A stretch of DNA of 39,970 bases. Source: Klebsormidium nitens. Lineage: Eukaryota > Plantae > Klebsormidiophyceae. The stretch is from contig DF237684.1 in assembly GCA_000708835.1 (NCBI GenBank), forward strand, positions 1-39,970. Reading direction: 5' to 3'. Positions 7,377 to 38,417 of this stretch are shown here, piece after piece. The notes beneath the pieces are model-generated. The model was given only the letters and a program-made list of their open reading frames with translations. It was not told where the DNA came from and made no database searches. The position numbers and the translations under genes were made by a program. Positions within the stretch are counted from its first letter, which is position 1. Every line of letters begins with the position of its first letter.

Positions 7377-9297
7377 GCTTGTAAGCAACGATCTGCTCAG
7401 CAACAATCTGCTCGACAGACACAACCTGGATGCGCCACCGTGCAGCTCTGGTATATCGATTCTGAAGGCTGAAGCTTTGAACAGCCTTCAGCAGCTCGAG
7501 CTCAGCATGTCAATTATTTTCAACTTGTGTCCTCTACCTAAAATCCAGAGCGCTGCCTGAATGTAAATGACACGATTAATACTTTATAGGCATAGAGCGT
7601 ACCGAAGGCATATCGAAGGCATACAAGGCTACAATTTGCATTTGGTATTGTATGTACCTACTAAACTTGAAAGTTGAAACGCATGAGTCATGAGTCAAAT
7701 GAGTCGTGACAAACTTTCTGCTACTTCACGTGCAGTGTATATGCCAGAGACGATTTACGAATTGAGGAGCAGCTTTCATCCATACGCGGATAACAAAAGC
7801 TACGTCCTTGCACGAAAACCTGGTCGGCCCAGATGGCAGCTGGAATTTTACATGCAGGACTGTGGATGCCCTCTTGCCTGCTGATCTCGCCTGTGTGTAG
7901 GATCACTTTTTGAGAGGAGGACGCTGTGAGTCTTGGTCTCCTCCTTCACCATGAGCTGATCCTGGTAGGATGGACGCCATTCTCTCACACCACCTCTCTT
8001 GCCGCGGTGTGCGCCCTTCTCGTCCGCAACGCTTGTGTCTGATCAGAGCCACCACCCACCACGATTTCGATGGATAAGTTCCATCATTGGGAAGAGGGCC
8101 AAAGTCACCAAGGCCCTGCCCTACACTGGGATTTGTTGGAAGTGCAGTCACTTGAGACAAACCTCTGAGGGCGTCTATGCTGGTCTCATCAATGCTGGTT
8201 TTGGTCATTCCGCGGCAGGCAACAAGAATGAAAGCCTGCGCATCAATCATTCTTGGATCAAGGGCGTACCCAGGCAACAAGAAAGTGCAATTTTCAGCTC
8301 TCGGTCTGCTTTGTCTGGGAGCGCAGAGCCCCGTTCGCCAGGGCGAAAATGTTTTAAAGGAGAGAACCAAATTCTAAAATCTGTGGGATCAGGGTGCGGG
8401 GTAAGTACACACTTTGAAAGCCCTTCTTTGGCGCCCTTCCCATCTAGCAACAGGAACGGCCGTCAGGTTACCAATGCTGTTGCCGGCGGGGTGATCGTGG
8501 GGGATCGGTCAGCTACAAGTAGCAAAAAGGGCTACAGCTTTCTCTTGAGCTCAAGGAGGAAGAGTGCGGCAGATCTGATGCTGACAGAGGGGGCGGTAGC
8601 CAGTTGCAGTGAGGCACAGGTCGTCAGTCAAGTGCTTGAAAGGCAACTGAGTGAAAGGACAGCGTCAACTAGCAAAGCACCTTACAGCAGTGGCCCAACA
8701 AGGAGGGGCAGGCTAGAAGGAGCAGTGACGTTAGAGAAACCGGATGGGAGGAGGGGTGATGGAGAGGCAAAAGCTGTTTCGCGGTCAGCAGCGCTGAAGA
8801 AGCTAGCAGAGGTCCATGACACACTTCTCCAGTCAGGGAAAGCAGAGGACTGCGCCAGGCTGGTGCAGTCAATTGCTGAGGAGGGCCGCTGGAGTGCAAA
8901 GCAGATCGACAGAGCCCTCAAAGGAGGCCGCATTGTAAGCTCCAAACAGAGGGGTGCTTCTCGGTCGAGAGGCCGAAACCGACTTAAGGACTTGGGCCCT
9001 AAGTAGCCTGGCCCGAAAAAGCTGGAATCCTGCACATTTGTGGAGGTATGGTTGGGGTCTGCGAAGCTTAGGTACAAGATCGAAGCACCATACCGCCCAG
9101 TTTCGCTACTTAGGAACATGGCGCTATCAACCATGGCACCGACCAGGCTTAGGGACATGAAACCCTGCCACCATGGGCATGTTCGTCGTTTTCCAGGCCA
9201 GTGCCATTTGCTGGCAGGGGGGAGAAGAATGGATATTCCTTTCAAAGTTTCAGAAGCTTGAAACGGTTTCTTCCAGCTGTACACAAACAATGTCAAA

Positions 9298-9933
9298 ATG
9301 TGTGGGGAGAGGGGATTCGAATTCATCTGTGTCGTGATGCTTTCTGGATATGGGTTGGTGGACGAGGTCCAAGGCTATTGGAATACGTGGAATAAGCTGC
9401 GTATGAAGCCTGAAGAGAATATTTCTGAATACAACGTGGCTTTTGAACAGGCACGTGCTGATGTGGCGACCGAGATTCAAAGTAAACAGGCGTTCATTGA
9501 GAGGTACAAGTTTGGCTTGCAGAAGGATCTGAGGGAGGCTGCTCGTGCAGCTCCATCTGGCAAGCGCTGGATTACTCTAAAAGATCTCATCGAATTCTGT
9601 ACTCTGCGGTGGCTCTCGATTCAAGCTTGTCTTGGCATGTCGTTGAACAAATCTGGCAGCCAGAACAACGGGTCACCATCTGTTAGGGTCGGTGGCAAGC
9701 GCAAGGCATTGTCACCTAACCGTCCTAAGAGGTCTAACAAGGCTTCATCTGAGGCAGAAGATTCTGGCAGCTTCCCTTGCTTGACTGACGAGCAAAAGTC
9801 TAGGAACATTTGGGACAATCTGTGCCACATCTGTGGAAGCCCATATCACTATAGTAAGACGTGCCCAAAACGCCGGGTTCCGTGGAAGAGTAGTAAGGGC
9901 AAGGGTGGCAAGCAGCAGAAGGATTTCTCTTAG
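9298..9933 (+). CDS. Retrotransposon Gag fragment with CCHC zinc knuckle (cargo of the TIR element)
   Basis: The Retrotrans_gag-like segment is LRMKPEENISEYNVAFEQ...FIERYKFGLQKDL. The zinc knuckle is CHICGSPYHYSKTC (CX2CX4HX4C). Confidence 0.85.
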   Translation: MCGERGFEFICVVMLSGYGLVDEVQGYWNTWNKLRMKPEENISEYNVAFEQARADVATEIQSKQAFIERYKFGLQKDLREAARAAPSGKRWITLKDLIEFCTLRWLSIQACLGMSLNKSGSQNNGSPSVRVGGKRKALSPNRPKRSNKASSEAEDSGSFPCLTDEQKSRNIWDNLCHICGSPYHYSKTCPKRRVPWKSSKGKGGKQQKDFS

Positions 9934-10289: not shown

Positions 10290-11793
10290 TGTCTGTTCAA
10301 GCCTGGTCGGTGCCATGGTTGATAGCGCCATGTTCCTAAGTAGCGAAACTGGGCGGTATGGTGCTTCGATCTTGTCCCTAAGCTTCGCAGACCCCCACCA
10401 TACCTCCACAAATGTGCAGGATTCCAGCTTTTTCGGGCCAGGCTACTTAGGGCCCAAGTCCTTAAGTCGGTTTCGGCCTCTCGACCGAGAAGCACCCCTC
10501 AGGTCGACACGAATAAGGGCGAGCACGTAAAAGGCCCAAATGTGGATAGAGCAGCGTACGAGTTGGCGCTCTCCAAAGACCCAAAGCGTGGTGAGTGTGT
10601 GACTGCAAAGCGCATTCTATACGACCGCCCTGCATCCCAAAGCCTGTGATCTTTCGGAGCCCAGGTCTTAAAATCATGAGAAACGTATGGTTGTTGAAGT
10701 ACTCGTTTCGGCCTTCTAGTGACCATTTCTTATCGATAGGTGCTTTTGCGTTAGATGAGTCGATACAGATTGGCTTCAAAAGAAGAATCGCATGAGGCCC
10801 TTAAATGATTAGGACATGTCCGGTGGTTTCAAGATTATTGATATGTCCTTCTCAAGGATCTGGATAAGCAGGAGAGCAATCAAGGGACCCTCGCTTCCCA
10901 AAGAGGGTCCTAACTTTTGTGCGAGTCATGAGAAACATTGGATAGACTGTTGGTTGGATGATGTGCAACATCTTGACAATCAGGATAAGAACGGCCGGCC
11001 TTATTTGACCACCGAAGGGGGGGCAACCCATATGAGACGAGAGGTATGCGTCTCTTGATACCAAGTCGTGAGAAACTCGCCGTTGATCTGAAAGTGCGCA
11101 ACTTCAGCTTGCTCAAGACTTTGCAGATTACGGACGCTTCAGCAGGCGAATTGTCCTAACCTCTATCTTCCCTCTCCCATGTCAGGAAGAAGCTGGAGAC
11201 ACTAGCGTTGGCGTTCTTCGAGGAGAAGCCGCACGGGTTCAAGCCGCTCTCAACGGAGCGGCTGAAATGGGGCTGCTATCTGGGCAGCATTCTTGAACTT
11301 ATCATGTCCTCCAAAGGCAAACAAAAACTGAGCAGTGGCTGGAGGATACCTCAAACGCCCGGTACATACCGGGCTCTACCAGAGACGCGCTAGCGGAGTT
11401 GCAACCCGACTTGCACAGCAAAGACTCGCGCATACAAATTGACCATATTTGGAACAACTCCTCTGGTGGCCCCGATCATCGGTACAACTACTTCCTGTTG
11501 CCGGGGCCGGTCAACGCGGCTTTCAACAAGTTCATGACGCCGCAGAAGCTCGCGGGGATAGGCAGGAAAGCCGCAAAGGAAGCCATGAACTTTCTGCAGT
11601 ATGTCAAGACGGAGATTGTTTGAAGCTTACATGACGCGCACTGGGAGCTTTCGCTTATGTGGCAACAAGCAAGAGGGCGGACACTTGGGAAGGATGGTCG
11701 TGCGTGGAGCTTCCTTGGAGGTAACAAGAAGGGAGAATTCTTGTTTCTTTAAGGGAACTCGATGATAACATGATTAAACGACTCTCGCCTTGT

Positions 11794-13606: not shown

Positions 13607-16600
13607 CTGCAGAGAGCATCGTGAGAAGGCCGTAAGTCAACTAAGCTAAGCTACCCCTCAGCCGTTGTCAAATTTCGCTACAATGACCTCATGCTCTCTT
13701 TTGTTTGAAGAGTCCATATCGAACCAGAGTTGCCTCATCGACTCGTGCACCTAGCTGGCAAGGAAGCGTTCTGAATGACGAGTCAACGGCCCCTTCTCAC
13801 TGACTCTGGAAAAAATCGTCAGAATCTCATTCGAGGCTCCTTTCCGGGCATACTTGCTTACATAGCTCTTCTTGATCACTTCACAAGGGAGTTAAATTGG
13901 ACGAAATCAACGTGCAAAGTTTTCGCTTGGTGAGAATAAGATGCCAGACGAAGTGCGCCTTCAATCGGTACATGTGAGAGCGGTCTTTAAAAGCGATGGC
14001 AAGCAACTCACGTTCTCTATCCGGCCGTCGCTTGCAGTGCTCCTCCTTCGAAGGGGCCTGTTTCTGTCTCCCCCATCTTCGCTTAGCCCTGCTTCCATGC
14101 GGGGGCCACCACCGGGTCGATCGTCTAAGGGTTCCGACATCCTGAACGCTGGGTTCTGGTCGCGCCAATCCACACTGCCTGGCACTTCCGGCGCAGAAGG
14201 CAAGGTTTGTGCACTGTCTTGCGCTGACGTTTGCGTGGGGACTGCATCCTCGAAAGGCGAGCCACCTTCGGGACTGCGAATCAGACCGGCCGGTAGAGTC
14301 TGCTCCACGTGAGAGACCAGCTTGCGCCTGCAGAGGGCACGTGCGAATAGAACTCAGTCGGACGAGGAGCAGCATAGGAGATGTTGCATGCGAAGAGATG
14401 AGACGCTCCATTGCGTCACAGGAGGATAACCTTTACTGAAGCATCATCTCTTCCTCATGGACTGCCTCCCTCGAAGGACAGGCATAGCTATACACACTGA
14501 TGCTTATAAGCAGCTCGTCGTGGGTGCCACTCAAGTCTGTAAACGCTCTCATGTCGCCTGCTCTGCACTCGGCTCTACGGGCAAGTCTCACCGGTAGTCC
14601 TCCTCTAAGAGCTTGTGCAAGACGAATTCAAGCAGCTTCTGGTCCGTCAAGCCGAGTACTTCCGCTACTGTTGCAAGCCACGATGACACGGAGGGCTGGC
14701 TATCTCCCACAGCAAAATCGGCCGAGAAATCGGCCCTGAGCTTGTCAGCAATCGTTCCAGCTAGGATTGCCTTGTCGCGCTTCCGTAGGCACAGGCTCTG
14801 TGGGGAGAAAAGACTGCATCGCAAAATTTCTTATGAACATTCCAGGTGCCGTAGGCTTCACGGCCGGCACCTCCAATGCCGCACTTATGCCGTTTGACTG
14901 CCGCACACGTGCCGCATGGTGCCGCACCGTGCCCGTATTGCCGCAACAGCTGCCGCATGATGCGGGCATTGCATATGGTTGTCGGACGCTATCACGTCCG
15001 CGCCGTAGTTGGTGCCGGGCATGTTGTTGTGCGGCAGCCAATAGCCGTGCCGGCATGGTTGGCTGCCGTGACGGCTGGGAATGTGCCGCGTACAGTGCCG
15101 ATACCCTCTTGTGCCATAGCCGTGCCAGCATGGCCGGCTGCCGTGACGGTTGGGAACGTGCCGCGTACAGTGCCGGCACCGTCTCACAAGAGACCCCAGG
15201 TAGTAAAAAAGATGTGGAGCCAAAAAAAAATTCGAAGAAGCTTACCAGCGCGCACTTTACGATAGACAGGCCAATAGCGCTTCGCATCGTAAACTGTGCG
15301 CCAGCCGTACAAACCGAGAAAAGGAGCCTGCCGCATGTGAGANNNNNNNNNNNNNNNNNNNNNNNNNNNNNNNNNNNNNNNNNNNNNNNNNNNNNNNNNN
15401 NNNNNNNNNNNNNNNNNNNNNNNNNNNNNNNNNNNNNNNNNNNNNNNNNNNNNNNNNNNNNNNNNNNNNNNNNNNNNNNNNNNNNNNNNNNNNNNNNNNN
15501 NNNNNNNNNNNNNNNNNNNNNNNNNNNNNNNNNNNNNNNNNNNNNNNNNNNNNNNNNNNNNNNNNNNNNNNNNNNNNNNNNNNNNNNNNNNNNNNNNNNN
15601 NNNNNNNNNNNNNNNNNNNNNNNNNNNNNNNNNNNNNNNNNNNNNNNNNNNNNNNNNNNNNNNNNNNNNNNNNNNNNNNNNNNNNNNNNNNNNNNNNNNN
15701 NNNNNNNNNNNNNNNNNNNNNNNNNNNNNNNNNNNNNNNNNNNNNNNNNNNNNNNNNNNNNNNNNNNNNNNNNNNNNNNNNNNNNNNNNNNNNNNNNNNN
15801 NNNNNNNNNNNNNNNNNNNNNNNNNNNNNNNNNNNNNNNNNNNNNNNNNNNNNNNNNNNNNNNNNNNNCCCGCGTGTTGTGTCGCCAACCGGTCTTCTTT
15901 CAGTACAGTTCCGCGGTCGGTCCGGACGGTGCCGCACGGTCCATATACCTACGGTGTATGGTACATACCTACTTAGCCTACGGTATGTACCGTCCGGGCA
16001 ATCTGCTGGAAATTGAGCAATCCGCCGTCGATGATCGAATCGACGGTCGGAGTTAAAATGTCGGGCCTACCTAGATTCAAATTCAAAATTCGACGGTCAA
16101 CCACTCGGACTCACTCAGTGTACCTAGCCTAAACGCCTAGACTCGTCAGACTTAGATTCGACACATTGTAGCTGTAATTGGTCGCTAGCTAGGTAAGCCA
16201 TTGGGCGCCGCCTTGAAGAGCGCCATGGCGCAAGTCGTTTCAATCCACCTTTAGACTTTCGCGCAGTGCCACCCCGCAACGGCGTAGATTGCCCAGGTGC
16301 GTCGACAGAGGATTGGAGCACGTGCGGCGGGATTGCGGAAGGCCTGCGTGATGGATTAAGGAAGACAACAATCGAGGGTGAGACACAAGCCATACAAACC
16401 ATACTAGCTCGAACCAATTGATGCACTGATTGCTGTAATGAACTTTGTATGCAAAGCTGTGCAAGATTTGCCAAGCTGTGTAAGAGTTGCCATTTATCCT
16501 CTTTGTCAAGATTGCAACATCTGCTTATAGAAGTGTCTTTCACAAAGCAGAGTTGCAACTCGATTATAACTTGGGTTGTTGCAATTGATCACTTTGATTG

Positions 16601-23308: not shown

Positions 23309-24579
23309 CATCAAGAGTTGTACTCTCGGTTGTTATACCTATGAGAGAATCTAGGTACCGTCCTACAGCTGTCACCAACTTGCACATAATGCATCGAGGA
23401 GCGGGTACTGGTTAGATTTGCAACTGTATAACCGCCGTTCAGAAATCCCGAACCCGGCTCGCGAACTGAAAGATGCACGCGCGTGTTCAGCGCGCGCGCA
23501 GATCATCATGCTGCACTGGATCCTTCCGACAAATGTGCGCAACATAACCTTCCGAGTACCCACTCCTGCGCCCTCAACGTCAACATCTTTTGGACTCATG
23601 ATGGCTAAGAACATAGGATTGATGCACTCTGCAAGGCCTATATTTTGTTTTCGAGGCAGTAGGAACGAAACTCTTTGACGTACGTTTGGGGCATCTCTCC
23701 GCAAGAGATGCTGTGCCTTTAGGGAGCGAGTATCGACCAGCTTCTGTTCCCTGGTCTCTTCTTCCCAGCTAGATCCTGCAAAGCAGATTTCGATGCGTGG
23801 CACTAAGGCACTGAAGACGCTTCCTCATAAGAAGCCTGCCGCTAGAAAGCGCGATTACGTAAGGTTTTGCGGAGCAGATTTATAGACCGTGCACGTGACG
23901 CAGAGATAGCAGAGGGAGTTGATTGCTCAAGAAGGCGGTATCTCGTAGAGAAGGAGCAAAGAAGTTGCAAAGGAACGGCTGTTCATGAGGAAATACCTTC
24001 ACGATGCACGACAAATTACAACTTCTTGCCGGAGCAGCGAGTCTTTGGCTGAGTGCTTCACCTCTTTGAGTCAATGCTCGCGACTTCCTTGGCGGCTGCA
24101 TGTCCTCCAAAATACTTACACAACATTCATCAGCCCCGTTCTATCATAGTATGACGGGACAACAGGTATTTCGGTCTTCTTGGCTAAAATTAGTATCTGC
24201 GTTGTGCAGATCTATTCGCTTCCATGTTGGCTAGCTGTTCATAGCGGCGTGCGAATGCTCGATGCGCAAACGGGCTATACTACCTGATTGAAGCAGTGCA
24301 TCTCGTGCATCATCATGGTCGCTTCTTGACAAGGGTTGACGTTGTCAATGCATGCAAAGCAAGATTGGACGTTTGACGTGCAAAGATCAAGCAATGCTTC
24401 AATGAGTGTTTGACTCGCTTATCTGTAACTCCTGCTGTGTCTCTCGGATGAACGGCTCTACCGTCAGTAGCACGCGCCTACCGGGCCGCCAGCCTGCTTC
24501 GATACAAAATCAGTATCCTCCCTCTGTCACAGCTCAGGTTGTACCCTTACCGAATCTCCTCCTCCTGCTCTTTTGCATG

Positions 24580-25125
24580 TCAAGACAGAACGTTCGGAGG
24601 GCGTACGCTCCTGGACTTCGGTCTTCTTTCCCCTCCTTCCTTATAGCTCCTTGCTGTCCGGTTCGTGAATGCTTCTTGCTGGTGCCTTTCGACAGCGCCA
24701 TCTTTACCCGCTTCCTCCCAAGGCCACTTCTGCCCCTCAAAACCGCCCGGGTGATTACCCCGGCCGCAGCCAGCGTCCTGTGGAAGCGGCGAGTAAAATG
24801 TGCTCCCTGCCCGGGGAAAGCAAGCACGCGCATCCTGGCTAGTACATCTCGTCAAACAGAAGATGGCCCAACAGCCCAGGCAGGTTCGGAGACTGAAAGA
24901 AGCGCTTCTCTTCTTTTCCAGCATACGCCTTTCTAGCCTCCTTTGTGCCTCATCTCCAGGGAATTGCGCACGGCGCGGCGGGGTAGTTTTTCCTGCCTCC
25001 CGCTTTATTGCATCAACAAGAGCAGCTTCCTCAGTTGCTTGTAAAGGAGTTGGCTTGCCCTATTCCTCCCCCGCTTTGATTTGAGTGGCTGTTTTTGCCT
25101 GACCCGTTTCGAAAACGACAGCTGT
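24580..25125 (-). pseudogene. Coding-like segment of unknown identity between the Hog and receptor-like RING genes
   Basis: One frame is nearly open for ~180 codons (QAKTATQIKAGEE*GKPTPLQATEEAALVDAIKREAG...RRPKSRS) with one TAG. No domain recognised. Confidence 0.25.
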
Positions 25126-25295
25126 CAATCAAACCAAGAGCCCTCCGCGGGAGTGCTCACTCTTTCGCCCCCTGATGTTTTTCCCCATCTCAACGGCTAA
25201 GAGCAGCACAGCATCGCCAGTCCCTCACGGAGCGCCACGTGGCAGAACCACGTGAGCACACGGGTCCCATTTTCCAGGCTCTTCCCCGCTGCATT

Positions 25296-28200
25296 TCAAG
25301 CAAAAGCCGCGAAGAAGCGGCGCAGAATCCACTCTAGGGCTGCTCGCGGCACCAGGGCCGCGACCAACCGGGCAGGCAGCATCGCACGGTGGAAAGCCCC
25401 GAGGGACGGAGGGAAGGCGGTGGTGAACTGGAGAGCGGCCACCCGGTCGACTAGGATGGTCCCGCTCACAGTTTTGGGGCTGTACAACCCGGCAGGACGG
25501 ATGACGTCACGCTGACGACCGTGCTGGGCGCGAGCGAGGTTTGCCTTCCGGGGCCTTTGGACGTCCAGATAACGTCGCCAGGTTTTACGTCTGCGAAGGG
25601 CTTGATGGTCGCTTGCTGAATTGAGAGGGTAGATCGAGGGTCCGAGACCAGGATGTAATGGTTCGGAGTACCGCTGATGCTTACACCCGCGTCGGCTTCG
25701 AGGGAGACGTAAGTGGCCTGCAAAAGAGTTGAAGGATTGGTGTTTGATGTCCAGCAGTGGCATGAAGAGAAAGACTGATCTCTGCCACAAACAAGGGACA
25801 TCCCTTCTTGGTTCTTTGCAGTGCACGACAGCAAAGTCGTAGAAACTTGTCCGCCAGCTCTAGTTGATCTGGGGTAAGAGGCAAGTTTTGATCCCCCAAT
25901 GCTCAATGGTCCCGACAAAAAAGCATCATGAGTTGAGCATATGAAGCCTAGGGGCGGTGATGTGTCCGCCTCAAATTCACGCTTGCACTTTTGTTGTTTT
26001 CAAGTGTTTGATTGTTAGGCAAGCAGCGCCAATCTACGGGCCGGATGTTCAGCGCACAAAGGCACGTGGAATAAAGCGGAATCCTTTTGACGGTTCTGAT
26101 CATATCCGCAAACGAACGGCAACCGTTTGACTGCCTTTGCTGAGGACGACAACTTAAGTCCTAAAACGGATGAGAAGTCTTCTTTAACTAGAAAACCAGT
26201 CACAAGGTGCCTTCTACCCCTTTCCTTTCATTCGCGTGCTTTGTTTTCCTTTGAACACTTTTCTGTCAATTCTTTATTCAACTTATTCTTTACTTTCTTA
26301 GCACAATTCCGGCGGCTAAAGTCGTGCGACTTACCGTTTGGTTCAGGTGGTGCGTGAACCAGTACACGGGCTGTACAAACAGCTCGCCAGAGCTCGGGTC
26401 AAAGACAAGAACGGGATCGCCCAAATGGACGTCCGCCATTCTTTTCCAGCCGCCGTCCGCTAACGTCACAAAAGCGTCAGCGGGAAAGCAGCCACCCTTT
26501 TTGACCGGAAGGGGAGGTGCGGGGGGCGGCGGTGGCGGCGGGGCCGGGGGCGGGTTTGCGAAGCTCTCTAACGGGGGGTCAAAAAAGGGTGGTTCCGGGG
26601 GAGGAGTTTGCGGCGGCGGCGGCGGCGGCTGTGGGCGCTTGGAGGGCGAAGGCCCAAGCTGCGGGGGAGGGGGTTTACCGATAACGGACCAGGTTGGGTC
26701 CGAAACTACCTCTGTTTGCGCGCTAACGCCCCTCTCTTGCAGCGCGGTTGAGAAGGACCCTGAGTCGACAGACTCCGCGATTGCTGCGGCCTCTGAGGAG
26801 ACTGCGGCCGCGTTAGCTGCGGTTATGCTGATAACCACCTGCACACGAGCGCTAACCGTAGGGGTTTCGGTTACTTGAACGTCCGTCGGCGATAGACCGG
26901 AGGACTCGAAGGCAGCGCTGACTTTGCCGCTAGAAGCGCATCTCCAACGGCCTGCGCCACTTCCTTCGCTTGAGACCCGTCTGTACAGAGGATGCTGAAC
27001 AAAACCCTCAACCCTGGGGTTTGAAGCAACCCGCGTCGCCTCCCGCTCTCCGAGAAGCCGTCTATGGAAACGGACGAAGGATCGACATTTAGAGCGTACG
27101 ACACCCCATCGATGAACGCCTCTCTCCCGCCCCAGTCGGTCCAATCGTCGGGCGACACGTTGCCCAACACGCAGGAATGGTTAACGGCGAAGGTTATGCC
27201 GCTAATGACTACAGACCCCGGGTCAAGCCCGTTGGCTTCGGCAAGCGAGAGCGCGATGTCGTCGTTCTGGATCAGGTTCGCGTCCTCGAGGCTGGTTAAG
27301 GAAACCCCGACGTTAATCGACGCTGCGACAGCCGCGGCCGCGCTTGGGGAAGGCGACTGAGAGGGAGAGGGAGAAGGGGAGGGGCTGGCCTTTGGGCTTC
27401 GGCTGGGTCTCACTGAGGCGCGCGGGCTTGGCGAGGGGCTCTCTACCGGGCTCGAAGGAGTGCTCGGTGAGGGGCTCGGGGAAGGGCTTGAGACTGAGCT
27501 AGAAGAAGAGGGGCTTGGCACCGGGGAGAGAGACGGGCTTTCTACCGGGCTAGGAGAAGCGCTCGGGGAAGGGCTCGGGGCGGAGCTAGACGTCGGGCTT
27601 GGCACCGGGGAGAGAGACGGACTTTCTACCGGGCTAGGAGAAGTGCTTGGGGAAGTTTGAGGCGCAGCGCTTGAGGAAGGGCTCGGTTGAGGGCTCGAAG
27701 AAGCACTCGGGGAAGGACTACCGGGCGGAGAGGAAGCAACTGGGCTTGGCGACGGACTCGGGGAAGGGCCTTCGCTTTGACCTGCACTTGTTGACGGGCT
27801 ATCGGAAGGACGCATGTAGGGGCTGCTAGAAGGGCTCGCAATTGGGTCGGGGGATGCGCTCGCAATTGTGCTGGGAGATGGGCTGGCAACCGGGCTGCTG
27901 GAAGGGCTAGCAACCGGGCTGCTGGAAGGGCTAATAACCGGGCTGATGGAAGGGCTAGCAACCGGGCTACCGGAGGAGCTGGCAAACGGGTTTCTCGGGG
28001 GACTCGCAAACGGGCTGCTGGAAGGGCTGGCAAACGGGTTGCTCGGGACACTCGCAAAGGGGCTGCTAGAAGAGCTCGGAGTTGCGCTGCTTGAGGGGCT
28101 GGCAGCCGGACTGTTTGAGGGCCTAGGAAGCGGGCTGCTAGAGGGGCTTAAAAATCGGCTTGGGGAGGGACTGCTTGAGGGACTAGCAGAAGAGCTAGCC

Positions 28201-31200
28201 ACCGGGCTAGGAGATGGAACTGGGCTCTGCGAAGGGCTGGCGGTAGCACTGTTACCGAGCACCGAAACTTGGACGGCCGTTTCTGCGACGCGCCCGAAGT
28301 TGTCCGTCACAGAGAGCTTGAACGTGTAGTTGCCGGCTACCAAGCCTGACGCTCTCGCGGCCGGCAGGGTCGCATTCGAAAGCACTGAGGCGGGCCCCGA
28401 CACTTGCTCCCATGCATAGCAACTTGCCCGGGGCGGATCCCCGACCGCCCCCAGGAGCTTCCTCCGGGCCCTCGTGCACTGCCCGCGGTCCTCGCGAAGG
28501 GGTATGCAGCCACCATTATAATCATTATCAATGCAATACTTGCAACCGGGCGCATTGTAGCAAGCCCGCTCGCTGTTGGGACACTCGCAGAAGCAGTTCC
28601 ACCCGAGGTTGTTGTAGTTGCAGTTGAAGCTCTCCCAGCCAAACTGGCACGAGCACTTGTTGTTAGCCAGGCACGTGCCCCGGTTGTTGCAATTATAAGA
28701 GCACACGAAGGGGCTGCGTGAAGGGCTCGGTGAAGGGCTCTTGCTCGGGCTAGGAGAAACCGAGGCTTTGGGGCTGGGGCTTCTGCTTGGGGCAGGGCTA
28801 GGGCTTGGAACCGGGCTGGTGCTTGGAACCGGGCTGGCACTTAGACTCGGCTGTGGGTTTGAGCTGGCCCCCGGGGAAGGGCCCGGGGTGGAACTTGGGC
28901 TTGGCTGTGGGCTTGAGCTGGGCCCCGGGGATGGGCCCGGGGTGGGAGCCGGGGTAGCAGGCGTGCAATCTTTGCCGACGTATGAGTTGGCGCACAGAAG
29001 GACGAATGAGTTTCCGCTCGGGGCGCAGGACAGCTGACCGGGAGACGAGACGTTAAGGCAGGGGCTTGGAGGCAGTTCACACCGGGCCCCGCTGTAACCA
29101 GCCTTGCAGCGGCAGGCTGCGGCATTGACGGTGGTAATGCACTCTCCATTGGGGCCGCAGTCGACTCCGAAACACGTGGCACACTTGGACGAGCGCGACC
29201 CGTCGAGGAGGACCGAGGTTTCGGACGTCAACGTGATCTGTGCCGCAGGGACGCGCGCACGCGGGCCGGGCGCGGCAGGGCACGTGCTGCTCTCGTTGCA
29301 TTGCTGGGCCAATAAGCTCCAGGGTTGAGAATTGGTTGGGGTTGCAAGGCAGNNNNNNNNNNNNNNNNNNNNNNNNNNNNNNNNNNNNNNNNNNNNNNNN
29401 NNNNNNNNNNNNNNNNNNNNNNNNNNNNNNNNNNNNNNNNNNNNNNNNNNNNNNNNNNNNNNNNNNNNNNNNNNNNNNNNNNNNNNNNNNNNNNNNNNNN
29501 NNNNNNNNNNNNNNNNNNNNNNNNNNNNNNNNNNNNNNNNNNNNNNNNNNNNNNNNNNNNNNNNNNNNNNNNNNNNNNNNNNNNNNNNNNNNNNNNNNNN
29601 NNNNNNNNNNNNNNNNNNNNNNNNNNNNNNNNNNNNNNNNNNNNNNNNNNNNNNNNNNNNNNNNNNNNNNNNNNNNNNNNNNNNNNNNNNNNNNNNNNNN
29701 NNNNNNNNNNNNNNNNNNNNNNNNNNNNNNNNNNNNNNNNNNNNNNNNNNNNNNNNNNNNNNNNNNNNNNNNNNNNNNNNNNNNNNNNNNNNNNNNNNNN
29801 NNNNNNNNNNNNNNNNNNNNNNNNNNNNNNNNNNNNNNNNNNNNNNNNNNNNNNNNNNNNNNNNNNNNNNNNNNNNNNNNNNNNNNNNNNGTCTCGTTCC
29901 CTTTGAGGCACGTGCAGGTCGACTCGCACCAGCCGCAGCCGGCCCTGAGCGCGCAGTCGCGACACGTGGCGGCGTTTGAGAGGCTGCACGGGTCAGGGCA
30001 CGTGGCTGCGACGGTCGCCCAAGCGTACGGGAGCATCGCTGCGTCCGTGGGCTGAGAGCAGACACCGACGTACGGGCCCTGGTCGTCTCCAGGCCGACAC
30101 GCAGAATCGGTGTCACACCAACCGCAGCCTGCGGTTTCCGCACAGGCATGGCAGTCAAGAATCTGGGCGCAGTCGGAGCGAAGTATCGTCTGGCCAAGGG
30201 AAGGAGCGTCGAATCCAAAGTGGGCGATTGCTAACTCAGAGCCCTGCGCGAGGACTTGCACCGAGCCGACCCAGTTGGGAGCCCCGGTCACTTCGCACTG
30301 GAAGATTGCCCCGAGGTCCAGTATTTGGAGCCGCTGGTCGTAGTAAGACTGCCCGGAAGGAACAGCAGCGATCAGGAAGGGGAAGGACGCGCCAAAGGTG
30401 CCGACAACTGTTACGGAAGTTGCGGACGGCAAAGTAGAAGAGCTCCCAGCGCGGGAAACCGTTGTGACGAGGACCGTGTAGTTAGCCAAACCGCGGATGA
30501 TAACCGGACCGGTAGTGAGGGCCGTCTTTGTCCCGTTGGCGTCGCTGGATTGCAGCTGCACAGAAGGTGAAGCATTTGAGACGGGAATACAACAAACCCT
30601 GAAACCCTGAAACCCTAGATCCTCAAGAAGCTCGTCAACCTACGAGAAAGCTTGTTTGAAGGCGGTTCACAGCGACACTAAGAAGTCAATATTCCTTGTG
30701 AGAAGCTGCTTTCTCTACAACAAGTAAAGAAAAGGCGTACTGCAGAAAACGACAGGCTTCGATCAACAGATTCCGAACATGAGGAGTTGAGCCGCAAAAG
30801 CGAAAAGAGAACTTTCTGCCAAGGCTCGTTGAGAGTGTTTGACTTTCGGGAGCAAAGTTACCTGCAAAGACAGCAGTCCCGAGCGGATCTTGTTTGGAAT
30901 CTGAACGGTGAAGCTGCCGCTATTGGGCAGCGCATCGATTGGAACGCTGATCTGGGGCCCGTCATCCAACGGGTCGATGGAAGCCAGCTGGACGGTTGAC
31001 GGTGAAGCAGCCGACCGAGACATCCGCAATTTGACGCGCCCGTATTGGATGCCCCCAGTCCACGTGACATTGTACGTTTGGCCCGCCGTCCACACGTCCA
31101 GCGAAGCTGGTTGGCTAATGAACGGATCTACGTTTAGGCATGGGTCCACGTTGCAGGCCTCCTGAACAACACGTGGCACAAAATTATGAGCGGCCCATCG

Positions 31201-34200
31201 AGCACGTTGCTTTTAGACGGGCCAAGCATGATCAACGGAGGAGCTGCTGCGTGACAGTGGACTCCAGGTTCGGACGTCCAACGACTGTTTGCCTGATTTC
31301 AAATTCCCTCGCTTCTCTTTCTTTTACAGCTCGCCCTTTTTGAAGGACTCAATGCGAGGGGCATGTCCTTTTCGCTCTCTTCTGCAGTCAAGTCCTCAAC
31401 TTTGACACTCCTACGAGCTCTTGCACTGGCTGGCGACTTGAGAGCTTGACTGGCCTAAACAGAGGTTTCACTAGCTTTCTGGCCTGTTTGGCAATCAGTG
31501 CGCCTGATAAACATCCCTGTTCTTTCAGAGGACGCTCTACAAAGTCAGGAGCAGGAGTCTTGAGGACGAAGAAATAGCGGCAGGGTTGCATGTTTATCTC
31601 CTTGTCGATACACCTTCCTCTGTCTCTTTTCAATGGGACGTCCGCTTCATCGTCCGGCCCTGTCGATTCGGACATGCTGCACTTCCTTCTTTCATGCCAT
31701 GAAACGATGTAGTCTATGGCCGGGTAAAAACCATTGAAATAAAGAAATAATGAAAGAAAGCACTTTTTCTGTTATCTCTTCACGAAGCAGCACTGACCTG
31801 AGTGGGCGGCCGCGCGTCGCTGTCGCAGAGTGACACGTCAGCAAAGCTGCCGTCGGACGCTTTGCAGGCGAGGTCCCGCACGTGACTCCCGCCCCCGCAG
31901 TCCTGGGTGCACTTTTGCCACTCGCCCACCTGTAAGAAAGTGAAGAGCGGACGTCCTTTGCTCAGTTCCGGACGGCATGGCTCTAACTCACGCTTATCAT
32001 CACAACGAGCGTGTGCATTATCAGCCGTTGAGAGCCAATAGATCGTGGAATCCAGGCCGTTGCTTGATCCAGCAAGGACGCCTCTCTTCAAAAAGGATTG
32101 CCGCTCGTTTTATGGTTGGGTTTTTGCTTCATTCTGGCCTTAGACAGCAAGCAAACAATTCTTAAGGATCACGTGCGCAATCATATGTGAGCATTCCTGC
32201 GTCTTGGAAGACGGGTTTTCTTTTCACATGCAAGTCCCCTCTCTGACATGTCTCCCCCTTTCTTAAAGTTTTGGAGGTTTTCCCATAAAGCGAAAGGAAG
32301 CAAGAAGACACCGGAAACAAGCAGTACAAAAAGATCATCTTCGAATCTTGAACTTTGATGCATCTTCGACTTTGGACTGACGATGTGAGAATGTTGAGGC
32401 TTACCTGCCAGGCATACGTCCTGCACGGCTGCGTATTACATTCGTAATACGTATTGGTGACGCTCGTGCTAGGATCCGGCCCGCAGTAAAAGTCCTCGCA
32501 CGTCCGGTCGTCCCTCCGTCCGTTCCACATGACGTAACCCTTACAAGCGAACTTGCGCCACTGGGTGCCGCCTCCGCAGGAAGCGCTGCAAGGCATCTCG
32601 GAAATCACGACCCACTGCGCTTTGTTTGTGCAGCCGTCATCGCAGTAGAGCCTGCAGGACCAAGAAAGATAACAGAATCTTGGTCCTCCAGATGTCAGAA
32701 TCTGCTTCTAGTCGCGCTCCATCAAACGACTTAGAGCACCTCTCAAAAAATACCGCAATGAGTAGGCTTGCAGGACTCAAAACCGAAAGACTGGGAGATC
32801 TAGCACCCTGAGGTTTCAGACTGAAGCAGGTTCGTACGCTTGACAAAAGAGAACACCGACCACATGGTTGTAGCTCTTCACGCATCCAGCCCGCTTCGAA
32901 ACAAGGGCTCAAAAAGGGGAGAGCGAAAGGAGAAGTTGCGAAATTGACAAAAAAAACTTCGTTCGTAGAGCTCCTTTCAGCTGAGTACATTCTCAAAGAG
33001 TAGGCTCAGAGAGTAATTTTGAAGCATCCTCTTATCTGACGGTCAAGAGTGCAGCTTAGAGTCGTGACCTGAAGATCTCCGTCAGGCCCACAAGATTAGA
33101 CCGAAGACGGAAATTCTTATGCCTGTGTCCTGTTTCGGACTTATTGTTCATGGAGAGAGACTTATTCCTCATGAAGAGGGAATCATGGTTCATGAAGAGA
33201 GGCTTATATTCGATGAAAGGGAGACTTATGGTTCATGAAGAGAGACTTATTTTTGATGAAGGAAGACTCACCCTTGCTTCCTGCAGCATTCTTGGTAGCC
33301 GTTGCCCCGCGTGTCGCAGCCGAACGTGGTCTGGGTTCCATACCGGAGACTCGTGGCAACCATTCCGCAGAAGAACGTTCCGTCTCCGTTCGACTTACAG
33401 GAGCAAGCGGAGCAAGAGTAGCCGCTCCCCGACTGACACAGCGGGACGTTGGGGCACTGCACGCACGCCTGCGCGTTGCAGCTCGCGCTCACGGAGGGCC
33501 TCGTGCCCGGGTTGCATAAGCTGGCGTCAACGGTGGTGCCGTTGAGCGCATTTACGCAGCTTGTAGTGCGCGTTCTCACACCGCCCCCGCACTCCTTGCT
33601 GCACGGCCCGAAGTCCCCGGTCGTCCAGACGTAGCCACTCATGTCCAGCCCGCCGTAGACCGCAAAGAAGTCACTGAACGCAAAGTTTCCCAAATCCTCA
33701 TCGGACGCCAGCAATAATTCGAAAGCTCTGCTCGTCGGCAGGCCGCCGTCAATCGCCCAGTAGAACGAGCCCGTGTTGGGAATGCTCGCGAGCGGGATGC
33801 CGAATCCCGAGAAGACGTCCGCGCTATTGTCGAAGCGGTAGCGCAGGACCACGTTGCCCCCGAGGGGACCCCCCGACCACTGCACGGTGAAGCCCTGGCC
33901 TGCCCGGAGGGTGTTTAAGGAGGTTGGGCGGGTGAAGGCAATCTGCTGCTCCTCCAGGGCGCAGCGATTCGTCCACCAGTCACTCGGCAGAGCGCTGCTG
34001 CAGGCGCTCTGCGATTTGAGGCACGTGCCACTGCTCGCGCACCAGCCGCAGGAGGCGCCCCCGGTGAGGCACACCGGGCAGTCTTTGAGGGCCTTGCAGG
34101 GGTCGGTAGAGGCGCAGTCCCCGCCGTCGAAGTTGCACTCCGGCAGGTTGCAGGCTGCCTCGCACGTGCCGTCTCCCAGGGAGCTCGAACGGCACGTGCT

Positions 34201-37200
34201 GGGGCACCCAGGGACAGTGCACGTGCCCGTGGTGGCCGGTTTTGCGCCCGCCTTCGAGCAGTGCGCGTCGCCCATTGCGAAACCCGGCTGCCCGTCGGCC
34301 TGGCACGTGACGTCGCGCTTCCACAGGCCGCTCGAAGTGCATGTGCCCCAGCCCCCGGTAACCCACTTATACACCGGTTCGGCTCCCAGCAGAGGAACGC
34401 AGCCCGAGCAGAAATTGCACGGAAGAAAGTGCTTCCCAATGAGCTTGACCTGCTTGCGGAACGGAACGATGCTCCCGCCGACGTTGATCTTCTTTCCGCT
34501 GATAGGGATCTCCAATTTGCGGGCAAACAAATGTTGGTCAAGCGAAAAGTAGAATGAGTTGCCAGTCCGGAAGGGAGGGACCGAACGGCTGACAAGGAGA
34601 GAGACGAATGCAATCTGGTTTAAGCTGCTAATAAAAGTCTTGCAGACGGGCAAGTAGGGGCCAGAGACAGGCTTTAAGGGTCACGTATACTTTGGATCAC
34701 CCCAGGAGAGAGAGTCAAGCTAGTCTTGCTTGACAATCAGATTGATTGTCTACGCTCTCTTGCAATGGAAGATGACGAATGGATAGCCATTTGGGAAGTC
34801 TTCTCTTTTCAGAACCGAGCTTGTAACAATTTAAGGAGCCCCCACGTCTCAAGTGTTCCGTCATGACTTCAAATAAGTGCCAACACGGTGTCAAAACAGA
34901 CGATGGGACTGGGTGCTTCAGCAGTAATGATGAGCCCAGATATTGCGAGTGTAAATGCGCTCACTTGTTGAGGCCCAAGGATAAGTTGAACCCGGCGTAC
35001 GTCCTAAAGGAGAAGGGGCAGTCTGCCGCATTACTGTCTGAATTGGCCCGGAAGTCCGCCCCGAGGTACGGCATCGGGGCAATAATGATCGGTAAAGCGT
35101 CGTAAAGCTTTAGGGTTATTTCTGGGATAAGCAGTCCTTCGACCGTTGCTTCGCCCTGGAAAGAGAGCTTGGGCTCCTCGTGGAAGTTCAACGGGGCAAA
35201 GTCGTCCGGCTGAACCGGCCGGAATTCCCCCCAAGCTGCCCGGAATTCCTTCCCAAACTGCGCAAAGAAGAGAAAAGCATCTCGTTGTGCGAACCATCTG
35301 GTTATCATGAAAGCAAGCCCGAAGCTCAAAGGAGTCAGATGCTGAGGATTCGAGTCGCACACGGTTCCAATGAGCACGGTCTGCACAAGAACCCGGGTGA
35401 GAGCCGCTTCGAAACTTCCTTCCAGATCAGAAGTCAAGTCGCGAGGCTCGCACTTATCAATAGCTATAAGCAATCAGTTTCTGGTTTCGGCCGATTCCGG
35501 CATCCTAGCTGATATAAGATTGAACTACATAAGCTGATATAAGTCAAAAGTATATAAGCTCGGATAAGACCCCTACTTGCCTGCATACGCTGACGATAGT
35601 CCACCCCAAAGCTCGCTCCACCGCGCACTGAAGCCGCGACGTTCGCCTGCGCCTTAAGCTGAATGCTAGGGGTTACAACGATGGGCACGTCCCCTGCCAT
35701 GATGGTGAGCGTACTCAGCACCTTGTTGGGGCCAATCGGCTTCGTCCAGCTGTTCCTACCGGCTATATGATCGAACTGCGCATTGAAGTCTGCATTCATC
35801 TGGAAGTCGCCGCTGATGACGACCTTCATCTGGTCCAGATACACCGGAACGACAGCCTGCACTCTCAAAGAACCTGGGTTTCTCTCAGAGGGAACGCCTC
35901 GGTATGCACAGGGAAAATGTGACGTTAACCAGCACTGGTTAGGCCCTGGTTAGATGCCTTTTCACGATACTGCATTTGTTCATAGCTGGTTACACACCTC
36001 TTAACCTCAGGATTAGCAGCAAGAAGTTCCTCTGATGTAGTACAGTTTGAGGAGGTCTTTTGATGATAGCAAGGAGGACGTTTCAAATTCCCTTTGCCCT
36101 CAAAAAGGCACGCATCAGACTGCAATGCAACAAGCTTGAGCGGTGGTGCTATCTGCGGTCGCAGAAACACATTCACGGAAGGGCATCTAATCTTCTCCGA
36201 GCGCGTGCTTTGCAAGCAGTTGCGCGCGGCCTTTCTCAGGAAAGTTATGCACGCAAGAAGGCCTTCTCTTCCAAAGCAAACGGAGGACCGACCTGCTGCG
36301 TTTTCAGCACCATATCGAAGCTGACCCCGGCCTCTAGGGTTGCGAAGCAATTCACGCACTCAACCGAAGCCCGAAGTTTTGCGTTGTCGTTGCTGGCCGC
36401 GCTCGCGGGATTCAGCTGGTCTCTTTTCAGAAGCGCCCGCTGCTCGGTCTCGTCGAAATTGAACGCGAAGATTCTCCAATTCGAATCCCCGTGCCACTCG
36501 TATTTGCCGTTTGCAAGAAGTTGAGTCATTACGTCTATCGCCGTAGCTGCACCATCCCCGACTTTCGTGATGGTGTGCTCTACGCCGTCATAAACTTGCC
36601 CCACCACTTTCACTAATCCGAGCAGCTTTCGACGTGCCCGGGTGAGCCCCTTTGCAGGGCTGGAAGCAGAGGACGGCGTGTACCTGGAGGAGAACAACCG
36701 GGCACTTGGTGAGCAGGCAAGGTGCCAGGATGTACCCGGGGAAGAACAACCGGGCAGTCAAGCAGGGGAGCAAGCGCTTGAGGATATGCACACCAACCTT
36801 TTCCTTGTTGCTTGTAGGGCCCGATCTCCTCAGCATCTTAGTCTCATCATTGACTCTCGTTCAGAATGTTGAGATCTGATGTCGGGCCAGAGCAGAGTTT
36901 TGACTATTGCTCTTTCGCACCGTCCATTCAGATTGTCTTGTTCTAAACAGATGATGCCTGTTTGAGCCCAAGCAGGCCACAATGCGTGTCCCAGAAGAAA
37001 ACAAAGCTCATAAGGAGTACCGGCTCGAGGCAAGAGCAGTGGGCGTGCGATTATACCCTGTTAGACACCCATGAGTAGAAGGAACCCAGACTTTCATTTT
37101 TACTGTCACCTAAATGCAAATCGGCAGCAAATGAGCCGCTTCTCGACTTTATTCGTCACCGTCTACTGTACCTGATAGACGGAGAGATGACGTAGGCTGA

Positions 37201-38417
37201 TATCACTGCTCGGAAAGACCGACCTGAAAGACACTTTTGCGCCACGGAAGCAATGGTGCAGCTCCCTCTCCTGTGTTTCTAAGATGACCGTTCCTTCCTC
37301 TACACCATCGACGGTCTGGATCAGCTTTCGGTAGATGGGAGCCGGCGCTCCCTCTTGGTCGGTGCAGTTCCACTCGAGTCCTCCGACCAGAGTTGTGCCC
37401 ACGCGCCAGCCTGGCAGGTGTGCCCGGTTGGACACACTGAGGTGGAGTTGGCCGCCCAAGCACCTGATCAAAAGGCAAAGAGCTTCTTTTGGTGCTCTGC
37501 TTGAAAGGCTGGAATCAAGCAAGCAAGGAGGAACGACTGAATGCATCAACAGGAGTTCTAGTGATCAGATGACCTGAGGATATTCTCCTTAGTGGAGCTA
37601 AGGACAGGCCACTGTTTAAAGCTTGAACCTTAACGCAGCTTCCTAACAAGATCTCGCCCACATTTAGCCAAACTTTCTAGGATGAACCTTAATGATTCGT
37701 AATCCTCTCATCGCAGTCAGTCCACATCTCCAATCGGTTCACTTCCAAGCAGACCACTGAAAGTGAGCAACCAACGTACACGCAAGCATCAGCTTCAGCT
37801 GAACCAAGAGCTGCGTGTCTGACACCTGTCAAACTTCTAACCAAGAGCATAAATGAGGCCTTCTTCCTGCTTTCATGGGAACTTTGCTAACCAGATGAGG
37901 TTAAGGGGTGTCTAACCAGCTACTAACCAGCTCAAGATGGTGAAAAGGTATCTAACCACTGGGGCCTAACCAGTGCTGGTTAAGGCTAACTTCTCCCTGT
38001 GTTTCTGATCTTGTCCCACTCTCACCTGACGCTCGAGATGACGTCAGCATGCTGCGCCAGGTTGACCAGGTGTGCCACGGTGCGCACGTTGTACTTGATG
38101 TGCAGCAGAGCCCCGGAGTCATCCACCATGTGCATTGCCTCGTAACGGTGATGTCCCCCAGTCTCATTCTGCTCCTCAGCGTCCTCCAGAACGACACCCG
38201 GGTGGCCATGCTCGTTCTTGGCGAGGTGAGCGTCCAAGTCAAAGGACTTGGAATGGTGCTCCAGCGTCTCGTCGTCCCAGTCTCCTTGATCCTCTGTGAA
38301 TGCGAGAGCGGACCAATGGGAAGCTGAGAGGCGGAGACAGAGGACTAGAAGGGAGACGCGGAATAGGAATTTGGGTGGAAACAAGCACTTGGGATGACCG
38401 TTCATTAAGGAGCTCAT
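25296..38417 (-). CDS. Giant secreted mosaic Hog protein (TSP1/LNR/PSI/PLAT-like/EGF/PKD-like/Ser-Pro/SEA-like) with C-terminal Hedgehog-type Hint domain, ~2700 aa; two apparent 1-nt frameshifts and one N-gap
   Basis: Exons 38417-38026, 37463-37224, 36683-36293, 35856-35581 (GC donor), 35257-34965, 34498-33272, 32651-32405, 31929-31798, 31161-30862, 30555-26335 (spans the N-gap) and 25717-25296 are phase-compatible. The N-terminus is hydrophobic (FLFRVSLLVLCLRLSASHWSALA). TSP1: WTTGDFGPCSKECGGGVRTRTTSC, VGEWQKCTQDCGGG. LNR: CRSSSLGDGTCEAACNLPECNFDGGDC. PSI: CHACAETAGCGWC. EGF: CRCKAGYSGARCE. Hint: GGCFPADA...TPNH...GLYSPKTVSGTILVD. Frame breaks occur near 26938 and 25488. Confidence 0.8.
25420..26490 (-). 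other. Hint (Hedgehog/intein) autoprocessing domain of Hog type, interrupted by one intron (26334-25718)
   Basis: The N-terminal cleavage motif is GG|CFPADAFVTLADGGWKRMADVHLGDPVL (Cys codon starts at 26490). Block B is T-P-N-H. The C-terminal block GLYSPKTVSGTILVDRVAA resembles Hedgehog GxYAPLTxxGTIVVDxVxAS. It is followed by an SRR-like FHRAMLPARL segment. Confidence 0.9.
27355..28235 (-). repeat. Ser-Pro-rich coding repeat array in the Hog gene (24-bp SPxASPSS units and an 84-bp duplication)
   Basis: Tandem gggctagcaaccgggctgctggaa-like units lie at ~27880-28060. The motif gggcttggcaccggggagagagacgg recurs at 27511 and 27595. A second, shorter SP stalk lies at ~28720-28960. Confidence 0.9.
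29353..29890. other. Assembly gap (N run) inside the Hog gene coding region
   Basis: Run of N flanked on both sides by Cys-rich coding sequence. Confidence 1.
30594..30618 (+). repeat. Short interstitial telomere-like / telo-box-like repeat (AAACCCTG)2-AAACCCTAG
   Basis: aaaccctgaaaccctgaaaccctag lies in a Hog-gene intron and is similar to the plant telomere unit AAACCCT. Confidence 0.55.
33138..33270 (+). repeat. ~21-bp minisatellite, ~6 imperfect copies, abutting a 5' splice site
   Basis: gttcatgaagagagacttatt-like units end at the donor of the exon that ends at 33272. Confidence 0.8.
35895..36030 (-). repeat. ~130-bp dispersed repeat (MITE/SINE-like), copy A, intron 3 of the Hog gene
   Basis: Its reverse complement aligns with 37878-38000 (tgaggttaag.ggtgt.taaccagcta ... 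gtgaaaagg.atctaacca ... gggcctaaccagtgctggttaa ... tccctgtg). Confidence 0.7.
37878..38000 (+). repeat. ~130-bp dispersed repeat, copy B (inverted relative to copy A), intron 1 of the Hog gene
   Basis: A CTAACCAG-rich segment matching the reverse complement of 35895-36030. Confidence 0.7.

Follow-up and report, generated by a model that had tools for sequence, protein, structure and literature searches.

The 39,970-nt contig DF237684.1 of the streptophyte alga Klebsormidium nitens (assembly GCA_000708835.1), hereafter the window, carries on its minus strand, from about 38417 to 25296, a multi-exon gene whose coding pieces, recovered by stop-to-stop translation of 38.6–25.2 kb, are split by introns (Table 1). 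An initial annotation, made from the letters of this DNA, described the gene as a Hedgehog-like, potentially self-cleaving polyprotein in which a series of animal-type extracellular modules is followed by a Hint domain of the Hog type. Here we find, using profile searches, phylogenetics, codon-usage analysis and assembled RNA contigs, that both parts are present and share one transcript, but that two net -1 breaks of the reading frame separate the modules from the Hint and divide the Hint itself. We consider it probable that the gene encodes a mosaic protein that is secreted to serve in the wall or in adhesion, and that its ancestral Hog module persists as a transcribed relic in the 3' untranslated region (3'UTR).

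The gene is expressed: up to 80% of the sampled Hint-region words are present in RNA runs, and contigs for the gene were found in every study examined. Contigs were taken from four runs, which represent four studies and two organism labels, and aligned to positions 25250–31200, where they show zero mismatches and zero indels against the genome. A single X2 contig of 8,859 nt spans 31165 to 25250, with matching or overlapping contigs in the three other runs. One X17 contig (organism label B) carries five differing letters and a loose end at 27955–28144, in the second Ser/Pro stalk, and is identical over the remainder; a difference between strains or a mis-assembled repeat could explain this. 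Removed in the RNA are the intron 30861–30556 (306 nt) and the Hint intron (GTAAGT…CAG), and the loose end of the contig at 31165 maps to 31802, placing the next upstream junction between 31161 and 31798, across a GT..AG intron at 31797–31162. All 3' exons, those of the Hint included, are joined to upstream exons in one transcript, so that the predicted linkage is borne out by a single 8.9-kb RNA contig and the 3' 6 kb of the gene model is transcript-confirmed. Low-depth short contigs (2.4–2.8; runs X1 and X2) also occur at 26042–26308, wholly within the 617-nt Hint intron, and could stem from a retained intron, from pre-mRNA or from a separate small transcript.

The same contigs close an assembly gap inside the gene. 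In place of the 538 N, all four runs carry an identical 18 nt that codes for RPDFQS and joins f1 on the upstream side to f2 on the downstream side. The mRNA thus runs without interruption, and in frame, from one side of the gap to the other. The gap is about 30-fold too long in the assembly, and annotators should read it as 18 in-frame bases.

Which modules does the upstream part contain? A Pfam run on the stop-free translated pieces returned TSP1_ADAMTS in two stretches of 33271–34680 (E 1e-15; about 34395–34230 and 33627–33463), in one stretch of 31783–32109 (E 3e-9) and, weakly, in 32405–32650 (E 0.0032); the roughly four TSP1 repeats of the initial annotation, with their signature CSxxCGxGxxxR, are thereby recovered as three significant repeats and one weak one. 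The run also agrees with the proposed LNR/Notch repeat (E 5e-8, 34209–34114), the two Kre9-like domains (Kre9_KNH, E 3.7e-5 at 33927–33658, Ig-like, and E 6.5e-4 at 31113–30895) and the PKD-like domain (K319L-like, E 1.4e-11, 28430–28260), and direct reading finds the two Ser/Pro stalks (about 28949–28707 and about 28199–27372) and the poly-Pro linker that had been described. EGF repeats are matched below threshold (EGF at 29177–29076, an EGF/PSI-like Cys region at 28703–28620), and of the three or more PSI domains proposed, one has a sub-threshold match (E 7e-4, in 30555–29891) and the others are CGWC motifs recognised by eye, as is the signal peptide. Two assignments gained no support from Pfam at E≤1: PLAT, for which 29893–30555 gave no match, and SEA, for which neither 26874–27365 nor 26640–26961 did. 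An alpha/beta region lies after stalk 2 and before the stop TAA 26873–26871; the 164 residues that end the translated product gave a single-sequence AlphaFold2 model with a predicted local distance difference test (pLDDT) score of 39 and an alpha/beta pattern only, too poor for searching, which leaves the SEA-like domain unconfirmed. The N-terminal beta-rich region matched nothing in Pfam or the ESM Atlas.

The Hint module, for its part, is recognised by the profile PF01079 in three minus-strand pieces: 26293–27180 (E 1.6e-10, profile positions 8–63; exon A alone scores 41.4 bits against a cutoff of 29.7), 25469–25999 (E 1.5e-5, positions 64–143) and 25299–25859 (E 2.6e-3, positions 136–181). 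Jointly these cover profile positions 8–181, and no intein, BIL or PT-HINT profile match was obtained. Direct reading confirms, as first described, the Gly-Cys site at the Hint start (GG|CF, Cys codon 26490–26488) and the TPNH motif, which aligns with the T/S-x-x-H (motif B) of other Hogs, and places the terminal stop at 25298–25296. Joining the segments 26493–26335, 25717–25490 and 25490–25299 gives a conceptual translation of 194 aa, with an X at the second frame break. This conceptual Hog aligns end to end, at 30–40% identity, with eukaryotic Hog domains retrieved by exhaustive and profile searches, among them those of Porphyridium, sturgeon Shh and Hint domain-containing proteins of the chlorophytes Raphidocelis, Monoraphidium and Gonium; GCF, TxxH, GxYxPxTxxGxIxVD and the H…P.R tail are conserved, and the C-terminal tail, about 45 aa long, aligns with those of algal Hogs through this last pattern. 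A maximum-likelihood tree places it within the eukaryotic Hog clade, split from bacterial Hints with 100/100 support. Its branch is long (2.0 against a median of 0.89) and does not group with the chlorophytes, so that the exact position is unreliable. Judged by its sequence, the module is a genuine Hedgehog/Hog-type Hint.

The motifs listed in the initial annotation, however, are spread over different reading frames, and no intron separates them, a point that it overlooked. The first break, net -1, lies at about 27000–26880 and shifts the frame from f2 to f1 inside the single exon 29352–26335. The long f2 open reading frame (ORF), of which 1,154 codons are RNA-confirmed, ends at TAA 26873–26871, 125 codons before the Hint Cys, whereas the poly-Pro linker and GG|CF are in f1, a frame that opens only at 27180 and contains no ATG ahead of the Hint. 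The second break, also net -1, falls within the Hint at about 25510–25488 and leads from f0 to f2 in one exon: TPNH is in f0, its frame fixed by the confirmed splice junction, while GLYSPKTVSG/GLYSPKTVSGTILVD and the tail are in f2, and f0 stops at TGA 25468–25466. A codon-usage profile sees the coding signal switch from f2 to f1 at about 26990–26940 and from f0 to f2 at about 25510–25490. Since the RNA contigs match the genome without an indel, both breaks are real and not assembly errors. The Hint fold is thus not contained in one reading frame, nor is it translated in frame after the cargo. A candidate 36-nt 'intron' at 26873–26838 (GTAACC…GCAG) was rejected, as it is unspliced in the RNA and its removal would still leave a stop. 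Frame f2 stays open from within the intron through the entire last coding exon (25859–25299). A splice junction misplaced by a single base would therefore bring exon A and the C-terminal Hint motif into one frame and garble the TPNH part, an error into which automated gene models could also fall.

For this allele, then, a self-cleaving and possibly sterol-anchored product of about 250 kDa is not supported, as the ORF stops before the linker and Hint and the Hint itself is broken. We favour instead a secreted mosaic glycoprotein of about 2,100–2,200 aa, which would consist of a signal peptide, a beta-rich head, TSP1/LNR/PSI/Kre9-like/EGF/PKD modules, two extensin-like Ser/Pro rods and a short alpha/beta tail. 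The ancestral ORF would have run on through the poly-Pro linker into the Hog-type Hint, which would have cleaved at Gly|Cys and freed the large N-terminal fragment. In the sequenced strain the two breaks would disable this module, by ending translation early and by splitting the Hint between TPNH and its last strands, so that the Hint may now be a recent fossil in a long, still-spliced 3'UTR and the present-day protein probably acts in the wall or in adhesion without cleaving itself. The final ~13% of the ancestral coding sequence (CDS) contains both lesions, and more than 6 kb upstream stays open, a pattern that fits selection acting on the upstream part only; the loss appears recent, as the relic has not yet acquired stop codons. 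Self-cleavage and sterol anchoring are reasonable as a description of the ancestor, and possibly of paralogues.

Several observations weigh against this interpretation. The 5' third of the gene model was built with a small exon-chaining script and is approximate. About 330 relic codons are free of stop codons, and the breaks are therefore recent, or the relic is still used somehow. With its stop lying 537 nt ahead of a splice junction, the mRNA should be subject to nonsense-mediated decay (NMD), yet it was assembled at good depth. Contigs lose rare variants, so a minor in-frame form could escape them. Finally, the first break is not pinned by homology: BLASTP for internal repeats returned nothing and tblastn with the relatives gave no match upstream of 26530.

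How general are the lesions? The RNA runs probably share the culture strain with the genome, and natural alleles may be intact. The lesions could in that case be private to the cultured reference strain, with active Hogs encoded by wild Klebsormidium alleles or by paralogues, an explanation compatible here with the loss of the module that we favour. The good preservation of the relic, with all motifs intact and no stops, would suit it, but two independent lesions are unlikely to arise from culture alone, and protein and metagenome searches found no orthologue from another strain; we regard it as possible, if doubtful. An unlikely alternative is that the whole locus is a transcribed pseudogene that makes no useful protein, its mRNA being merely a detectable NMD substrate. 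Two disabling lesions, a stop far upstream of the last exon junction with a 3'UTR of about 1.9 kb, and the long branch of the conceptual Hint would all be expected of such a gene. Against it, at least 1,154 RNA-confirmed upstream codons are open, an open path runs through all 5' exons, transcripts recur from study to study, and the lesions occupy only the final ~13% of the CDS, where under free decay the second would land with a chance of about 0.13. With the upstream part intact and the lesions terminal, a truncated functional protein seems preferable to a dead gene.

A broader proposal is that the locus offers a snapshot of Hog-module loss in a giant Hog family, whose intact alleles or paralogues would still self-cleave and lipid- or sterol-anchor a TSP1/LNR/PSI/EGF wall or adhesion protein of about 250 kDa; we give this only a slim chance. 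Highly improbable, finally, is an intact self-cleaving Hog polyprotein in which recoding (-1 frameshifting or transcript slippage) or sequence errors account for the breaks: the same -1 shift is needed at both, the relic frames are stop-free and a CCCAAAA lies in the right register at 25478–25472, one codon ahead of the f0 stop, but four independent RNA assemblies equal the genome without an indel, double recoding in one cellular mRNA would be unprecedented, and programmed -1 frameshifting was rejected on finding neither a slippery heptamer nor a homopolymer of 5 or more at the first break and, at the second, this sole heptamer, which within 85 codons is expected in register by chance about 1 time in 3.

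A relic Hog module downstream of a mosaic cargo can be compared with several known systems. Hog proteins have been known since 2008 from moss, Selaginella, red algae and many protists (Bürglin; PMC2362128), eukaryotic Hint domains have been reviewed as widespread (PMC5784728) and chlorophyte genomes hold annotated Hint-domain proteins; Hog proteins of the green lineage are therefore not new. Like other non-animal Hogs, the Klebsormidium module has Gly-Cys before the Hint, TxxH, GxYxPxT..G.I.VD and a C-terminal tail that aligns with those of other algal Hogs, a His (FTHH) at the position of the cholesterol-activating Asp46 of Hedgehog, and a replaced Cys of motif J, as reported for moss and red-algal Hogs (PMC2362128); it likewise follows a lineage-specific N-terminal cargo with a putative signal peptide. 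In those proteins, however, the N-terminal part is a short novel domain, whereas here it is built of TSP1/LNR/PSI/EGF/PKD modules and Ser/Pro rods and measures about 2,200 aa, and the Hint is twice out of frame and on a long branch outside the chlorophyte clade. With animal Hedgehog (Shh, P0018) it has in common the Hint signature over about 150 residues (about 29% identity), the GCF start and TxxH. It differs in having no Hedge signalling domain, in the His equivalent to Asp46 and the Gln equivalent to Cys143, and in being untranslatable as a fusion. Loss of the Hog module is also known from the Hedgling-type and Hedge-only genes of cnidarians and sponges (PMC2362128), which resemble the present case in that a cargo persists without a working autoprocessing domain; in contrast to them, the loss here appears to be in progress, the module being still recognisable in the mRNA 3'UTR. 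An environmental Hog, P0033 (LNR + DUF5675 + Hint), also places an LNR upstream of a Hog-type Hint, which indicates that LNR-Hog combinations exist outside this genome, but it is intact, measures 753 aa and has no TSP1, EGF, PKD or Ser/Pro rods.

At one time, a streptophyte alga would thus have coupled a Hog module with a mosaic extracellular protein of very large size; the module would now be decaying while the cargo gene is expressed. The locus is of interest for the size and composition of its cargo and for a module loss that seems to be caught midway; for annotators, the Hint belongs outside the translated product in the reference strain. Non-animal Hog-type autoprocessing domains are, to our knowledge, known and functionally unexplored. 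If intact forms do self-cleave, a Hedgehog-like system would process extracellular-matrix cargo within the plant lineage, in an alga closely related to land plants, and intact paralogues, should they exist, would be the right place for testing such processing in the green lineage.

Searches for relatives bear on how the locus is represented in public data. An exhaustive HMMER search with the linker/Hint (f1) segment found no near-identical public protein among 1.8 billion, its matches being only 34–41% identical and mostly bacterial multi-Hint proteins; the relic is therefore apparently unannotated and omitted from public models. Word-index searches returned no protein of the same genome, and one candidate relative, P0145, proved bacterial. 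Two metagenome scans for orthologues gave first nothing and then one prokaryotic locus, L001, which is not an orthologue. The L001 contig has a prokaryote-like gene density, and its 527-aa ORF at 8076–9659 (+) contains a segment, 8871–8954, with 54% identity to residues 15–42 of Hint exon A. In the literature library searched, there was no paper linking Klebsormidium with Hedgehog, Hint or thrombospondin.

Table 1. Parts of the mosaic gene and its Hint relic, in window coordinates.
Feature	Position	Strand	Remarks
Exon 1 (modelled)	38026..38417	-	ATG 38417, signal-peptide-like hydrophobic stretch to SALA|FTED; donor CGTCAG|GTGAGA
Possible extra exon	near 37436-37306	-	from exon chaining
N-terminal beta-rich region	34965..36683	-	about 3-4 modelled exons: 36683-36293, 35856-35581, 35258 or 35155 to 34965
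Large exon	33272..34498	-	TSP1, LNR, PSI-like CGWC, Kre9-like, TSP1, Cys-rich tail
TSP1 repeat 3 exon	32405..32651	-	borders modelled; CSASCGGG...R motif read
TSP1 repeat 4 exon	31798..31929	-	3' end set by RNA
Kre9-like domain 2 exon	30862..31161	-	RNA-confirmed
Exon part with beta-rich segment and two PSI-like CGWC motifs	29891..30555	-	RNA-confirmed
Assembly gap, 538 N	29353..29890	.	18 nt in mRNA (+ strand GATTGGAAGTCAGGCCGC)
Rest of translated ORF, single exon	26871..29352	-	RNA colinear, 0 gaps
Former ORF continuation, untranslated	26497..26879	-	f1; alpha/beta segment and poly-Pro linker (26676-26497)
Hint exon A	26335..26496	-	GG|CF through ...FTHHLNQT
Hint intron, 617 nt	25718..26334	-	removed by splicing in all four runs
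Hint middle part	25490..25717	-	f0; TPNH at 25669-25658
Hint C-terminal strands and SRR-like tail	25296..25490	-	f2; GLYSPKTVSGTILVD; …FHRAMLPARL…; stop TGA 25298-25296
Remaining 3'UTR	24392..25295	-	end estimated: X2 contig record 9 extends 858 nt beyond 25250

Towards the 5' end, RNA contigs continue for about 3500–3577 nt beyond 31165 in the upstream direction. This slightly exceeds what the model and a normal 5'UTR would account for, and the 5' model may lack about 300–500 nt. A second in-frame ATG occurs 13 codons upstream of ATG 38417. Within the beta-rich region a GC-AG intron is likely at 35581/35580 (donor CAG|GCAAGT, acceptor gcgcag|TTTGGG at about 35258), which would keep the frame (…GVDYRQRMQ|FGKEF…).

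Elsewhere in the window, a second gap, of 526 N, lies at 15343–15868 in a neighbouring receptor-like RING ligase gene. An inverted repeat of 202 nt, 99% complementary, occupies 8949–9150 and 10299–10500, 1,148 nt apart, and encloses an ORF at 9262–9930 (+) with weak matches to Retrotrans_gag (E 0.047) and a zinc-knuckle (E 0.021); together they are probably a transposable-element fragment or foldback.

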